This document shows, piece after piece, positions 2,340-52,714 of a stretch of 64,000 nt of DNA. The position numbers and the translations under genes were made by a program. The DNA comes from Dendrobates tinctorius (Eukaryota), in contig NW_027361690.1 of the NCBI RefSeq assembly GCF_039654945.1, positions 97,712,001 to 97,776,000 on the forward strand, written 5' to 3'. The notes beneath the pieces were generated by a model that was given only the letters and a program-made list of their open reading frames with translations, was not told where the DNA came from and searched no databases. How positions within the stretch are numbered: position 1 is the stretch's first letter; each line of letters starts with the position of its first letter.

Positions 2340-4845
2340 TCCTCACTCTTCTGGAACTGAGGAGCAACGGGTGACTATTGTAATTTCGCTCCTTCAGGGT
2401 GAACCTGAAGCCTGGGCATATTCTCTTCTGAAGGACTATCAGTTACTTTGGACGGTTGAGATTTTTTTTCAGACGTTGGATCACACATATGATGACCCCA
2501 ATCGCGTCTCCCTGGCTGAGTCTATGCTATGTCAGCTTTGGCTGGAAGAATGGTCAGCAGACGAGTATTGCTGCGAGTTTCAGAGGTGGTCCACTAATAC
2601 TAACTGGAATGACCTCGCAATCTTGCCAGTTCTATCAAGGGTTATCTGTAAGGTTAAAGTATGCCTTTGCTCTTCATAGGACTCCGATCTCCCTTGAGGC
2701 AGCCATGTCTCTGGCCATCTGTGTAGACTGCAGTCTTCAGAGACACTTCAATTTGCAGAGGGCCCGGAGTCAAGGGAACCTGGGTTTAAGTCAAGCGAGG
2801 AACCCATGCAGTTGGACGAGGCATCATGTTGATCCATCGGTAGTTTGGCGTAAAGAGGAATGCATTTCTTCTGTAGTGGAAAGGGTCATTTTGTGGGTGC
2901 TTGTCCTTTCATATCCCACTGTAAACAACCTCTGGAAAACTAAGGAACCCAGGTTGCAAGGAGTTTGGCAACCCGAGTGTACCACTTCCTTTGTTGGTAT
3001 ATCTTAATTTTTCCTACTGGCCGAGATCCATCTTGGCAAAGATTACGTGGTCATTTCTGCCTCTCGACAGTGGGGAGAGATTTAATTTGATCGGCGCTAG
3101 GTTCTTCCATGCTCAAACCACAAATATTGACTGGATCAGTACCCATTATTGCTATTGACTTTCTTACTCAGGTTGTTCTTATGTTGCATTTACAGGTAGG
3201 GGTCATGCACTCTGAATTTAAAGACTTATGTGCTAGAGGGCTAGCCTTCTCTTGTGGTTCTTGAACTTCCTTGGCTTATGCTCCACAACCCTGTGGTAGA
3301 CTGGCAGACTCGGGAGGTGGTGAAATCGAGCGAGTATTGCCAAAAACACTGGGCACCTGGCTAGCCTGGGTGGGTACCCAATCTCTGCCCGATTACCTGT
3401 TTGACTTTGGGGATGTGTTTTCGGAACAGGGGTGTCAAGAACTCCCTCCACATTGTCCTTATGACTGCGTCGTTAATCTGACTCCAGGGGCCAAGCTTAC
3501 AGAGAGCAGATTATACAATATGTCTGGTCTAGAGAGGCAGAAAATAAAAGACTATATTGCTGAAAGTCTGGAAAGAATTATTTCAGACCTTCTTTAACTC
3601 CCAAAACCTACAAGAAGCAAAATAACCATAAACCCTGCTGTAACTAAATAAGTAAAAAGCAAGAGTGCATATACACACCACAGGGTTCCCAGTAATACTG
3701 TTTTTGATGAAAACTAGCATAAAAGCCATCCCATCGTCAACAATGTGACCTGATTGTGATGGTCTAATATTAAAAACCTTACCATGTGTCACAGTTGACC
3801 TCAGTTTGTGAACAAGGGCAAACAAAAGGACTCATCTATCGGGATCTCTCCAACCATTGGCAATTCCCAGTAGACCTTGGATTATTTGTCAGTAGATTTC
3901 ATTACTGATTTACCCGTATCTGCAGATAGTACACTTATTTTGGTGGTAATGGACAGGTTCAGCAAGATGTCTCATTGTGCTATCCCCCTTACCCAACGCC
4001 AAGACTTGGAGCAAATTTTCATCAAAGAAATTGAGAAATTACATGGAATTCCTACAGATATTGTTTCTGACTGGGGATTGCAATTTATTTTCAAATTTTG
4101 GGGATCCATCTGTCATTTTTTAAGCTTTTGTCCCACAGTCTAATGGCCAAACTTAAAATGTTACTCAGAATCTTGAGACTTATCTTAGGTATTTGGGTCT
4201 GATAATCAGGAGGATTTGGTAATTTACTTACCTCTAGCTGAATTCGCGGTGAACATGAGTCTACCGGTTCTCATTAGTCTACTGGTAAGTCCTCGTTCTT
4301 CAAGGCCTGCCGGTTTCATCCTGAGTTCAGCTCTACTAATAGGAATCATTCCTCAGAGAGATGGGGTTCAACTATAAGAGTGTGATTGATCGAAGACATT
4401 TGGTGTGGTTGTCCTCGAGGGACTTTAAGTTAAAGGTCCCTTCCTGGAAACTGTGTCCCAGGTTCATCAGTCCTTATAATATTGTGTCTGTTGTCAATCC
4501 TGCAGTATTCCGTCTTGCCACCTACTTTTAGGATTATAATGTGTTTCACTGGTCTCTGCTCCAAAAATACTTTGCGTCCTTTGAACCATTGCAACCACCT
4601 CCATGTCCGGTCATTGTTGATGAGAATTTGACGTTTCAGACAGCCAAGATATGGATTCTCGCATGGTTAGTCGGTCTCTTCAGCATCTGGTACACTAGAA
4701 GGGTTCAGCATCTGGTACACTAGAAGGGTTGAGGTCCTGAAGAGATAATGTGGAATCTAGCATCTGTTGTCCATGTAGTCAGGCTATTCTGATCCTTTCA
4801 TGCGGCACACCCTGATAGACCTGGCCCTGAGGTCCCTCTTGGAAG
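2340..4845 (+). mobile_element. Degraded Ty3/Gypsy (chromovirus-like) LTR retrotransposon internal region
   Basis: Gag-like VISLLQGEPEAWA...YDDPNR...EY..EF; RT-upstream DFGDVFSE...LPPHCPYDC..NL.PG; integrase LSVDFITDLP...VVMDRFSKM...LHGIPTDIVSD.G.QF; chromodomain-like remnant near 4600-4800; many stops and frameshifts. Confidence 0.88.
3681..3762 (-). ncRNA. Degenerate HDV-like ribozyme (copy C)
   Basis: P1 CCAUC/GAUGG, L3 remnant UUGACG, P4 AUGCUAGUUUU..AAAACAGUAU, J4/2 CUGG, P2 CAGG/CCUG; lies in a non-Gypsy insert (about 3595-3830) inside the Gypsy element. Confidence 0.4.
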
Positions 4846-5674
4846 ACAGCAAGAGAACAACAAGGTTTACCCGTACAGGCCTCCAATCAGGATGCAGTGG
4901 ACCCATATAATAAAGATGGCAACACAGGTGCAAAAATACCAATCAAGCAACTGCTCGCAGCCTACCAATACATGGAGGGGGCAGTTGCCTGGTATGTTGA
5001 TGCACAAAACAACTTGTATGCGGCGCTGTTCACACTAAGGCCATGCACAGCATCCAGGCCAGCCTAGTACCAACACCCTTCTATTAGCTCAGGCGGGCTG
5101 CCCAGCGCTAACAAAATGCATGCCGTGTGAACAGACACCGCAGTCTACAAGACCAAATGGGCCCAGCTGCACCCTGAATAAAACGTGCAAAAAACACATT
5201 TAAAAAAAATGTGGAGTATTAGCTGATATTTTGGCCAAAATACGTGAGCCCGTAACCTACGTCAAAGATCTCCACGTTTACGGGTACCTAACACTAAATA
5301 CTAATACAGTACAGTACAATAAGAGGACTTGAAAATCCTCCAATAATGGAAAACAGCAAGAGAACAACAAGGTTTACCCGTACAGGCCTCCAAACAAATG
5401 CACTATCAGGATGCAGTGGACCCATGAACAGCGCCGCATACAAGTTGTTTTGTGCATCAACATACCAGGCGACCGCCCCCTCCATGTATTGGTAGGCTGC
5501 GAGCAGTTGCTTGATTGGTATTTTTGCACCTGTGTTGCCATCTTTATTATATGGGTCCACTGCATCCTGATAGTGCATTTATTTGGAGGCCTGTACGGGT
5601 AAACCTTGTTGTTCTCTTGCTGTTTTCCATTATTGGAGGATTTTCAAGTCCTCTTTTTGTACTGTGCTGTATTA
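4846..5674 (-). mobile_element. Non-coding retro-insertion (permuted ~510-bp unit plus inverted segment) with 14-bp TSD
   Basis: GTCCCTCTTGGAAG at 4832-4845 and 5675-5688; 4846ff repeated directly at about 5353ff; 5425-5674 is an inverted copy. Confidence 0.8.
5211..5284 (-). ncRNA. Putative HDV-like ribozyme (copy A)
   Basis: Manual fold: P1 CCCGUAA/UUACGGG, P2 GUGGAG/CUCCAC, P3 UCU/AGG, L3 UUGACGU, P4 GUAUUUUGGCCAAAAUAU, J4/2 CUAA. Confidence 0.7.
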
Positions 5675-7074
5675 GTCCCTCTTGGAAGGAAGAGTCAACG
5701 CTCGCACTATAAGAAAAAGACTCTAGATTTGCATGAGCTGGTGATAAGGCCGGCTTGTGCAAATTATTTTATCACGCCCACAGGGACATGACATGGAAAG
5801 AGGGATGAAAAGTCTGACCCCATCAACTAGTCAAAGCCCTCATTAGCATAGGAAACAGGGACAACAATATAATTGCTTTTTTAAAGCATTTATTTAACTG
5901 AATTATGTTAGTTAGGGAGGTCATTCATACACAGGTGAATGCTGCTGGGATAGAGGGCATGGGGGACCCGACAGGTTCCCTGTAATTACTTTTATATTTT
6001 GATACGTTGGACTTTTCCGAATGCCACATATATTTTTTATCTTTGTTTACAATTGGGGAAAAGGGGGTGATTTGAACTTTTAAATTTTTTTTCATATTTT
6101 TATAAAGTTTTTTTTTTTACTTTTCACTAACTTTAGGGGACCTTGACCTGCGATCGTCTAATCACTTATGCTATATACAGAAATACCACAGCATTGGCCT
6201 GACGCAGCTCCTCTGAAGAAAATTTGTAAAACTCTGAGAATTTAACAACATTAAAACAAGTGATATTTTAGTGTGTATTTATATCACAAGATAATAATAC
6301 AAAAGTATATGAAGTTGACATTACTGTTGTGATACTGACCTACAGAATAAATCCAATACTTTTGTGCAGCACAGTGAATAGAGTAAACCTTTTGGTTAAG
6401 TTTTATGTACCTGAAAATGATTCCACTGACAAATACAGCTGATCCTGAAAAAATAAAAAAAGGCATCAAATGACTACGTAGACAAAAGTATAATAAAAAG
6501 TTATGTTCCCCGGAACATGACAATAATAAAGTGGGGAAAAAATAGTTTACCATAAAGGCCAAAATTGGCTGTGACACAAGTGGTTAATCCTGTCTTCTAG
6601 ATCAGTAAAAAATAAGTTGAATAATAGCAGACCCAAAACTGAACCGCATTCTGAGCGGCATGAATGTGAAAGACAGAAAAAAGCTAAATAGTAATATAAA
6701 AACCAATTCAAGAATATTCAGCAGCGTGGAAATGAATAATCTAGATAATGTTAATGGGAATCTGTCAGGTTTTTGGTATGTAATCTGAAGATAGCATGCT
6801 GTAGGGGTTAAAATACAGATTTCAGCAATGCTTCTCTTATCTTGTGGTTTTGGTTGCTTGCAATTATTGTTTTAGTACAAGGAAGTTATCATTGCAACAC
6901 TTACCTCCTGATCAGACTCCACCCCCTCCTGTGATGAGCAGCTCAGAGTCTATAGACATTGTATATACAGAGCCTGGTGTGGGCGGGGGCAGCTTTCTCA
7001 GCTCTGCTTCGTTGCAAAAACATGCCAATCAAATTAACGCATATTGTACCATGCAAATCAAAATAATGGCTTTT

Positions 7075-50288: not shown

Positions 50289-51202
50289 ATATAAAAGCTT
50301 GTGTCTCGTGTTGGCGCACGCACCTACACCCTGCAATCCCCGCTGATTATGGGATAGTAGATTGAGCTTTGTTGTTTGTGGGGGGGGAGGCCTTCAGTTT
50401 TTAATTTTTAGTACATTTGATTATGTAAATGTATGTTTGACATATTTTCTACTTACAGTTGTGCTCAAAAGTTTACATAGCCTGGCAGAATTCTGTAAAT
50501 ATAAAATGATAGTCAGGTTGACCAACAAAAATGTCATCCATAACTGCCAGGAAAATTGTTCTGGATGCAAAGAAAAACTCACAACTAGCATCAGCTGAAA
50601 TACTGGACTCTCTGAAAATTAGCGGTGTGGCGGTTTCAAGATGCACAATAAGGAGGCACGTGAAGAAAAATGGGCTGCATGGGTGAGTCACCAGAAGAGA
50701 TCCATTAATGGGCAATTGCCAAAAGGTATCTCACCTACAATATGCAAAACAGCACAGAGACGAGCATCAGCACTTCTGGAACAAGGTAATTTGGAGTGAT
50801 GAGGCCAAAATTTAACTTTTTAGCCACAACCATAAACGTTACATTTGGAGAGAAGTCAACAAGGCCTTTGATGAAAGGAACATCAATCCTACTGTAAAGC
50901 ATGGAGGTGGATCACTGATGTATTGGGGATGTGTGAGCTACAAAGGCACAGGAAACTTGGTCAAAGTTGAGGGAAAGCTGAATGCAGCACGTTATCAGCA
51001 AAGACTGGAGGCAAATTTGCAATCATCAGCCCGGAAGCTGCACATGGAACGTACTTGGACGTTCCAACATGACAACGATTCAATCCACAAGGCCAAGTCG
51101 ACCTGTCATTGGCACTCAAACAAAAAAGGAAGCACTCTGTAGCGCCATAGCATGCACACATGAAAAATGAATTGCATTACTGCATTAGAAATATGAAAAA
51201 TT

Positions 51203-51277
51203 GAAAAAGCTTAGCACATAAAATGGCCAATTTATGTGTACCTGGAAGCCATGTTAAGGCGTTTATCGGTTTCCAGG
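51203..51277 (-). ncRNA. Putative HDV-like ribozyme (copy B1)
   Basis: P1 CCUGGAA/UUCCAGG, P2 GAUAAA/UUUUUC (one mismatch), P3 GCC/GGC, L3 UUAACAU, P1.1 UA/UA, P4 CACAUAAA..UUUAUGUG, J4/2 CUAA. Confidence 0.65.
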
Positions 51278-51603
51278 ACCTTAACCTAATGCCAATCCTC
51301 ACTTAGGTTCCCATACAGATGAAGACTTTAGTCTATGTAAAGCCTCTCCTTAGACAGAAGTCTATATCTTCGTCGAGGGGTGGTGGCCCTGCTGTGATTA
51401 AAAACGCCTGCGGCTAAAAGGGGGAGTGCTCAGTCAGAAGGTTAATGAATACAAATTTTAATAAACTTACTGTCACTTCTAAGTATGAACAGGTGCTTAA
51501 CCTAGAGTCACCAACTCATATACACTCAAACAAAAAAGCCATAACATGCAAACATGAAATATGAAAAATGAATTGCATTACTGCATTAGAAGTATGAAAA
51601 ATT

Positions 51604-51678
51604 GAGAAAGCTTAGTGCATAAAATGGCCAATTTATGTGTACCTGGAAGCCACGAAAAGGCGTTTCTCGTTTTCCAGG
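51604..51678 (-). ncRNA. Putative HDV-like ribozyme (copy B2)
   Basis: P1 CCUGGAA/UUCCAGG, P2 GAGAAA/UUUCUC, P3 GCC/GGC, L3 UUUUCGU, P4 CAUAAA..UUUAUG, J4/2 CUAA. Confidence 0.65.
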
Positions 51679-52714
51679 ACCCTAACCTGTTGTTGGCGAC
51701 AGCAGAACAAAGTGTAGGTTCTGGAGTGGCCATCTCAGTCTCCTAACATCAATATCATTGAGCCTCTCTGGGAAGATCTCAAGCGCGCAGTTCATGCTAG
51801 ACGGCCCAGAAATTTACAGGAACTGGAGGCTTTTTGCCAAGAAGAGTGGGAAAATAAAGAACCTCATCCACAACTACCACAAAAGACTGCAACAAAGGGG
51901 GAGTAATATTCCTGATAAAATTGATAACAAATTTTATTGAAAATGATAATACATATAAAAACGAGTACCAATAATAAGTCGTATATGAGGACAAGATCAG
52001 AAAAGAGGCTCAGTGGGAACAAATGAAACCAACACCCTCCATACAAGAGGTAGAGTGGCTATCATAAGTGATATCTGGACATCCTTCATACCCTCTAGGT
52101 ATGGCTCTATGATGATTTATGTGACTATGGTTTTTGCTTTAGTATTATTGTTCACAAAAGACTTCAAGCTGTCATTGATGTTAGAGGGGGCAATACACGG
52201 CATTAAGGAATGGGGTATGTGAACTTTTGATCAGGGTCATTTGTATGTTTTGGGTTGTCATTCTGATTTAAAAAAGAAAACACAGTAGTTTGACAATAAA
52301 TGGCTTCACCCAACCACTAAACATGAGTGGAGAAAAAGTTTTGGTGTTATCATTAATATTCTCTGGAAAAAGGCCACGAAAGCAAAAATTCTTCCGGGGT
52401 ATGTAAACTTCTGAGCACAGCTGTATGCCTTAGCTTTGACTGCACGTAGTTTCTGCAACCACTGAGATATATACATCCAGCAATGGCCAGAGTCTGTTCT
52501 CTCAATAGGGACTTCATGCAAAAAAAAAAAAAATCTTATATTTTTTTTTTTTTTTTTGCAGTCACCTGCTATAAATCAATGCCCAGTCTAATGTACTTTG
52601 CTATACAGTTAGAGGGCAGTCTTGCACCGCTCACTACCACATCACCACAGATGTCACATCTATGGCGAGAAGATCTCTGTTCAATGGAAGTCTTCAACTG
52701 TCTGCTATGGTTTT

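Follow-up and report, generated by a model that had tools for sequence, protein, structure and literature searches.

Introduction

Self-cleaving ribozymes of the hepatitis delta virus (HDV) type are known from several retroelements. The closest described examples are those of the trypanosomatid L1Tc/ingi group (L1TcRz, the Pr77 hallmark and SIDER), which occur on autonomous as well as non-autonomous retroelements (PMC4035085, PMC3185411). These ribozymes have a C at position +1, cleave there in vitro as seen by primer extension and lose their activity once C1 is mispaired. Their authors pointed out that the G-C orientation in helix P1 and the make-up of helix P1.1 differ from those of R2 and HDV, and that commonly used search descriptors are drawn too narrowly (PMC4035085, PMC3185411). 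A different type of mobile element, the metazoan retrozymes that lack long terminal repeats (non-LTR retrozymes) and the pseudo-LTRs (pLTRs) of Penelope-like elements, is abundant in amphibians, shows target-site duplications of more than 4 bp and has circular RNA as its proposed template (PMC7229834; bioRxiv 10.64898/2026.07.22.740005). Here we analyse 64,000 nucleotides of the genome of the frog Dendrobates tinctorius (contig NW_027361690.1, positions 97,712,001 to 97,776,000; "the window"), in which minus-strand positions 5284 to 5211 are predicted to form an HDV-like ribozyme carried by a short non-coding retroelement.

Compared with the L1Tc/ingi ribozymes, the frog fold has the same HDV double pseudoknot, the same C at +1 paired to G and a P1.1 of 1-2 bp. 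It differs in position, as the trypanosomatid ribozyme makes up the first 77 nt of its element and also serves as an internal promoter, whereas the frog fold lies inside a vertebrate unit of 400-540 bp; the comparison is one of features, not of sequence. With CPEB3, genomic and antigenomic HDV, R2 and RTE it shares a 7-bp P1, a 3-bp P3, a 7-nt loop L3 of the U..CGU type and a joining segment J4/2 with a C and two A, but all of those have a G1.U37 wobble and a C-G-type P1.1. In CPEB3, L3 reads UUCACGU, and in antigenomic HDV J4/2 reads CUAA. Unlike the ribozymes of R2, RTE and L1Tc, the frog fold does not form the exact 5' end of insertions.

The carriers, in turn, resemble metazoan non-LTR retrozymes and the pLTRs of Penelope-like elements: their units are non-coding, measure a few hundred bp and contain one ribozyme each, and they are present as monomers, partial tandems and arrays. 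The described retrozymes all use a type I hammerhead, whereas the frog units carry an HDV-like fold. In the searchable literature, the finds of HDV-like ribozymes were limited to R2, RTE and L1Tc-type long interspersed nuclear elements (LINEs), CPEB3, deltaviruses and phages, and all retrozymes met there had hammerheads; no description of the present family was found there, in line with the initial annotation of this DNA, which knew of none. We consider it probable (roughly 0.74) from the sequence evidence below that the lineage represents previously undescribed HDV-like self-cleaving ribozymes of a C1-G37, or "L1Tc-like", subtype, present once per unit of a non-coding retroelement.

A nested double pseudoknot at 5211-5284

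Read as RNA of minus-strand sense, the segment is a nested double pseudoknot with the strand order P1-P2-P3-L3-P3'-P1'-P4-P2'. Its parts are listed below; family A is the lineage of this copy and family B that of two further copies near 51 kb of the window.

5211..5284, minus strand: predicted family A HDV-like ribozyme, 74 nt, with the same letters as the commonest family A sequence.
5278..5284, minus strand: 5' strand of P1, CCCGUAA, C5284 being position +1; partner 5249-5255; pairs 3 and 5 are changed on both sides relative to family B.
5269..5275, minus strand: 5' strand of P2, GUGGAG plus A; partners 5211-5216 and U5218, with A5217 bulged; 4/7 pairs are changed on both sides relative to family B.
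5256..5268, minus strand: P3 (UCU / AGG) around the 7-nt L3 UUGACGU; P3 covaries; L3 positions 1, 5, 6 and 7 (U, C, G, U) are constant in all families, a constancy partly fixed by the queries.
5247..5255, minus strand: 3' strand of P1, UUACGGG, then J1/4 CU; C5248 and G5263 of L3 form P1.1, a G-C pair for which family B and the GAGAAU families have A-U.
5223..5246, minus strand: P4 hairpin region, 24 nt, with apical UGGCCA; three pairs are changed on both sides relative to family B; families A and B have the same loop.
5211..5222, minus strand: J4/2 CUAA, then the 3' strand of P2; C5222 is the candidate catalytic cytosine; CUAA is found in families A and B.

The general layout occupies 74-75 nt and consists of a 7-bp P1, a P2 of 6+1 bp with a 1-nt bulge, a 3-bp P3, a 7-nt L3, a P1.1 of 1-2 bp, and P4. 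Between P1 and P2 of the 5284->5211 copy, J1/2 reads AC; P2' reads UA-CUCCAC, with one A bulged, and the P4 region CAC-GUAUUUU-GGCC-AAAAUAU-CAG. The initial annotation had already parsed this segment as an HDV-type double pseudoknot, and on direct reading its parse proved exact except for the limits of P4, from which it had dropped CAC before and CAG after the hairpin (3 nt per side of the 24-nt region). By analogy with the described ribozymes, we infer that the cut would fall between 5285 and 5284.

Of the parts of HDV-like ribozymes, P4 normally varies most, yet the apical UUGGCCA here, with its self-complementary GGCC loop, does not differ between families A and B (5231-5238, 51623-51630 and 51222-51229). 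UUGGCCA was pre-set in the genome-wide patterns used below, so the constancy of the P4 loop in the newer families is not gauged by those matches. This apical sequence may serve for dimerisation through kissing loops or for the binding of a protein.

Covariation between families A and B

A covariance model and a covariation count, checks of the kind proposed with the initial annotation, both came out in favour of the fold. The genome searched comprises 6.36 Gb in 830 contigs, with the window at C22:97712001-97776000. A covariance model (CM) built from 25 family B copies alone, with the nested helices P1, P3 and P4, finds family A copies at 26-38 bits, placing the single indel in J1/2, and scores the window copy at 5 kb with 33.4 bits (E 2e-5 in 253 kb). 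Alignment with MAFFT misplaced that J1/2 indel and set P1 off by one column; the CM-guided alignment was used instead. It contains 73 rows, 50 of them distinct. The full pseudoknotted structure was counted on it, and the control was obtained by sliding the 3' partners by 1-3 columns.

Among the 50 distinct copies, standard pairs occupy 88.4% of cells, against 20.7-44.2% when slid, and the covariation score is 0.342 against 0.03-0.09. Changes on both sides of a pair affect 12/29 pairs, compared with 3-4 in the slid controls, and are found in each helix (P1 2/7, P2 4/7, P3 2/3, P1.1 1/2, P4 3/10), so that compensated pairs are present in P1, P2 and P3, the helices singled out beforehand. The extra P2 pair past the bulge varies within family B itself, being C-G in 23 copies, U.G in 3 and U-A in 4. 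The C1-G37 pair is kept in 48/50 distinct copies.

The two families had been described as unrelated insertions, which is essentially right: by blastn, family A and family B units have no similarity beyond the motif, a leader GUUAGG(G)U and a U-rich trailer (about 10 nt on either side). The leader directly upstream of the predicted cut site, common to both families, reads GUUAGGUA or GUUAGGGU (5285-5294 and 51679-51688).

Further families across the genome

First-look candidates numbered 1,730 for family A (181-nt query around 5211-5284; 96-98% identity among those scored) and 2,146 for family B (141-nt query around 51604-51678; 92-98% identity among those scored). Pattern searches extended the set. 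The 34-place core pattern UUNNCGU-N8-GG-NN-CAC-N5-UUGGCCA has at least 2,000 exact matches in the genome against 0 for the reversed control. A 3'-half pattern, in which CUAA was pre-set, has 2,054 against 0; a P2-to-P4 pattern 571 against 16; P1-to-L3 patterns 617 against 3 and 421 against 7; and a pattern leaving out families A and B 25 against 0. The best 150 matches of the whole-genome CM search are family B copies only. From the whole-genome patterns at least four families were recognised beyond A and B, hence at least six in total. Their main types are the following.

Family A: P1 CCCGUAA / UUACGGG; P2 GUGGAG / CUCCAC; P3 UCU / AGG; L3 UUGACGU; J1/4 CU.
Family B: P1 CCUGGAA / UUCCAGG; P2 GAGAAA / UUUCUC; P3 GCC / GGC; L3 UUA(C/A)CGU; J1/4 UA.
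GAGAAU group: P1 CCUGGCA / UGCCAGG, CCCAGCA / UGCUGGG or CCUGGUA / UACCAGG; P2 GAGAAU / AUUCUC; P3 GCC / GGC; L3 UUAUCGU; J1/4 UA.
GGAGGU family: P1 CCCAUCA / UGAUGGG; P2 GGAGGU / ACCUUC (one G.U); P3 ACC / GGU; L3 UUGCCGU; J1/4 CA.

Other P1' types among the pattern matches are AUUUGGG, UGACGGG and UGUCAGG. P1.1 follows one rule in all families: a G at L3 position 3 goes with a C at J1/4 position 1, and an A with a U. Family A and the GGAGGU family have G-C; A-U is found in family B and the GAGAAU families. As its second pair, P1.1 has U-A, or U.U in family A. For P1, 53 copies were joined by hand, by coordinates, between the outputs of the P1-L3 and P2-P4 patterns: 36 are fully paired, 13 have one mismatch and 4 have two or more. 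At P1 position 6 an A is matched by U at P1' position 2 in 19/20 copies, a C by G in 22/23, and a U by A (5) or G (4) in 9/9. All five helices (P1, P1.1, P2, P3 and P4) are maintained by compensatory change across at least six families. P3 of family A and P2 of the GGAGGU family contain G.U pairs, which on the opposite strand would turn into A.C mismatches and thus hold on one strand only; the constraint therefore acts on RNA of minus-strand sense. L3 U-N-N-N-C-G-U and J4/2 CUAA are constant in families A and B and were pre-set in the queries for the other families.

Two candidates for new families, L007:1728-1802 and L024:1699-1729, turned out to be truncated ends of family B. At G000:C19:81.39-85.20 Mb, arrays consist of two ribozyme variants in alternation, spaced by about 367 bp, and one of the variants has a P1 strand CCCAGCA that does not pair with its P1' UAACGGG; these arrays look like dead copies amplified in the manner of a satellite and not by retrotransposition. 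Contigs of public runs, of unknown kind, contain related repeats in two organisms, the second of which has a family A-like sequence at 90-95% identity. Its contigs differ at 5256 and 5259-5260; the minus-strand change of G5256 to A turns a P3 U.G into U-A and is compatible with the fold.

Carrier elements

The insertion around the window copy of family A and its flanks are as follows.

4841..5674, minus strand: family A insertion; a sense copy of 1.15 units (5425->4841) head-to-head with an inverted partial copy (5425-5674).
4832..4840, not stranded: target-site duplication AAGAGGGAC (minus-strand reading); second copy at 5675..5683.

Exact target-site duplications of 8-15 bp are also present in 12/29 other family A loci under a strict test. 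Units measure 507-543 bp in family A and 401-427 bp in family B, and each repeat unit has one ribozyme fold. Tandem arrays exist with periods of 427 and 543 bp, the longest of at least four units. The carriers have no open reading frame (ORF) longer than 94 aa; ORFs near the copies belong to unrelated neighbouring LINE and Tc1 fragments. Rfam scans of the window and of representative loci found no hammerhead.

In coordinates counted from the predicted cut site, 3' ends cluster at 431-445 and 490-493 of 507 in family A and at 162-175 and 252-255 of 427 in family B, and 5' ends are scattered (truncated) in both. Three of the four preferred 3' ends finish in UGUAU or UGUAUUA. Segments extend up to 2.3-2.6 units and run seamlessly across the cut site. 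Together, these properties identify the carriers as non-autonomous elements spread by target-primed reverse transcription, in a style close to that of non-LTR retrozymes and Penelope-like elements; the variable length of the duplications (8-15 bp) and the truncated 5' ends rule out a reading of the inverted pairs as DNA transposons. Head-to-head junctions occur often, 15 times in family A and 26 times in family B. Both arms of such insertions finish at canonical 3' sites, as if both DNA ends of a staggered break had primed reverse transcription.

Class assignment and alternative explanations

The fold has the topology of HDV, a 7-bp P1, a 3-bp P3, a 7-nt L3 with its U and C-G, a P1.1, and a J4/2 with a C and two A; a trans U-G pair in loop III is documented as a core element of HDV ribozymes (PMC3386971). 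The proposal of a frog family of HDV-like ribozymes on short non-coding mobile elements is thus supported, with helices compensated in at least six families and carriers bounded by target-site duplications, catalysis being suggested by analogy.

Several points weigh against this assignment. The classical G1.U37 wobble at the cleavage site is absent, a C-G pair taking its place. An Rfam scan of the 64-kb window at the gathering threshold gave no match, so that a comparison with the Rfam HDV models, which the initial annotation had suggested, did not bear it out. In a permissive scan the best hit was the HDV family RF02682, sub-threshold at 15.5 bits (gathering score 44; E 2.7), aligned in register over model positions 2-38, that is, the P1/P3/L3 half only; it was the sole ribozyme-like match, and permissive scans of three representative loci gave no ribozyme. 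Thermodynamic folding yields weak minimum free energy z-scores (-0.8 to -2.2), the pseudoknot being beyond the reach of the method. The new families were rebuilt from overlapping matches of 28-35 nt to patterns of up to 35 places, and the letters CC...GG, CGU and CUAA, pre-set in these patterns, carry no independent information. Changes at P1 positions 3-4 pass through CpG decay and are weaker evidence, as 3/4 of the double-decay outcomes still pair; those at position 6 of P1 and in P2, P3 and P1.1 are not CpG-driven. Finally, only 1/90 family B segments and 0/46 family A segments start at the predicted cut site.

Part of these observations would suit a fold that is selected but non-catalytic, for example a reverse transcriptase (RT) recognition or packaging site, or a dimerisation element acting through the UGGCCA loop, whose likeness to HDV is merely one of topology. 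In its favour, the DNA copies bear no footprint of cleaved ends, the cut site lacks the G.U wobble, the Rfam HDV models score below threshold, and the P4 loop is constant between families although catalysis does not call for this. However, the letters that stay constant are positions of the HDV catalytic core (the first U and the C-G of L3, the C and two A of J4/2) while the helices vary freely, a binding site has no reason to keep the 7/3/7-nt geometry of P1, P3 and L3 together with a covarying P1.1, and the C1 subtype of the trypanosomatid elements does cleave in vitro (PMC4035085). We therefore regard a purely structural role as unlikely. A motif spotted by eye in 64 kb, with a P4 that is a DNA palindrome and inverted pairs at many loci, might be suspected of being a parse by chance, or a palindrome at the level of DNA, from a DNA transposon or fold-back element. 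This reading is refuted by the covariation far above slid controls, the at least 2,000 genome matches of the core pattern against 0 in the control, the target-site duplications and the segment ends. The G.U pairs are valid on one strand only, and the duplications of variable length with 5'-truncated ends point to target-primed reverse transcription and not to cut-and-paste. We give this reading practically no weight.

A further alternative keeps the ribozyme active but lets it work as in R2, RTE and L1Tc, trimming upstream host or neighbouring sequence to set the 5' end of the element, with no circular stage. No other role of HDV-like ribozymes in retrotransposons is documented (PMC3185411, PMC4035085, PMC3774820), and in a few copies of family B, among them the one in the window at 51688, the start lies 10 nt upstream of the ribozyme. 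On the other hand, the 5' ends are scattered with no enrichment at the cut site, copies of 2.3-2.6 units cross that site seamlessly, tandem arrays exist, and 60-250 nt separate the ribozyme from the preferred 3' ends. The ribozyme is internal to the repeated unit, like the hammerhead of retrozymes and Penelope-like elements, and not placed at the 5' end as in R2, RTE and L1Tc. We judge 5' trimming improbable, if a little less so than a non-catalytic fold. An L1Tc-like HDV ribozyme internal to the unit is the reading that we prefer.

Proposed mechanism and significance

By analogy with described HDV-like ribozymes, we infer that self-cleavage would take place 5' of C5284 and produce a 5'-OH and a 2',3'-cyclic phosphate, with the CUAA cytosine (C5222) as the probable general acid, aided by a Mg2+ ion held by the U/G pair of L3. 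Cutting of multimeric or read-through transcripts would release RNA of unit length. Because the DNA copies cross the cut site seamlessly and almost never start there, the template for reverse transcription would most likely be a re-ligated circle or an uncut multimer, as has been proposed for hammerhead retrozymes mobilised by Penelope-like elements. The simplest reading is a cut of multimers into units that are then closed into circles; an uncut multimer fits the data equally well. Only one of the 90 family B segments starts at the cut site; the ribozyme thus leaves the ends of the DNA copies undefined, in contrast to R2 and L1Tc. In the case of a circle, the RT may copy it from a fixed internal start, at times for more than one turn, which would explain why the fixed 3' ends lie at a distance from the cut site, why copies can exceed one unit and why head-to-head pairs occur.

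It is tempting to propose, tentatively and at somewhat less than even odds, that retrozymes of a second, undescribed class exist in frogs, with an L1Tc-like HDV ribozyme in place of the hammerhead: the ribozyme would cut multimers, the units would be circularised, and rolling-circle reverse transcription would proceed from a fixed internal site. Ribozyme modules would then be interchangeable in animal circular-RNA retroelements, and HDV-type ribozymes on small circular RNAs would have a genomic reservoir in vertebrates, with a bearing on how deltavirus-like agents arose.

The combination described here, an HDV-type fold with the little noticed C1-G37 pair on tandem-prone non-coding vertebrate retroelements, comprises thousands of copies and many families. 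If the ribozymes are active, the search rules for HDV-like ribozymes need widening, as standard descriptors and Rfam miss the C1-G37 motif; the families would provide a natural mutational series for the cleavage-site pair and P1.1; and it could be tested whether animal genomes make small circular RNAs with HDV ribozymes, a matter tied to the origin of delta-like agents.

Family B copies in the window

The second insertion of the window is old and comprises the following features.

51113..51688, minus strand: family B insertion, 1.44 units long (period about 401 bp), old, with 81% identity to a young monomer.
51604..51678, minus strand: predicted family B ribozyme, copy 1; every helix is intact; in L3, UUUUCGU takes the place of the family's UUACCGU or UUAACGU, which weakens P1.1.
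51203..51277, minus strand: second copy of the family B ribozyme, decayed; P2 contains one U.U mismatch; L3 reads UUAACAU, the conserved G having become A.

Both copies had been said to keep the pairing and the unpaired landmarks. This stands for the helices of 51604-51678; it fails for 51203-51277, with its U.U mismatch in P2 and the loss of the L3 G. In thermodynamic folding in silico, the variant L3 of 51678->51604 can mispair with P2. The flank at 51690-51800 translates like the C-terminal part of a Tc1/mariner transposase, and from this translation the family B insertion appears to sit inside a dead Tc1 element.
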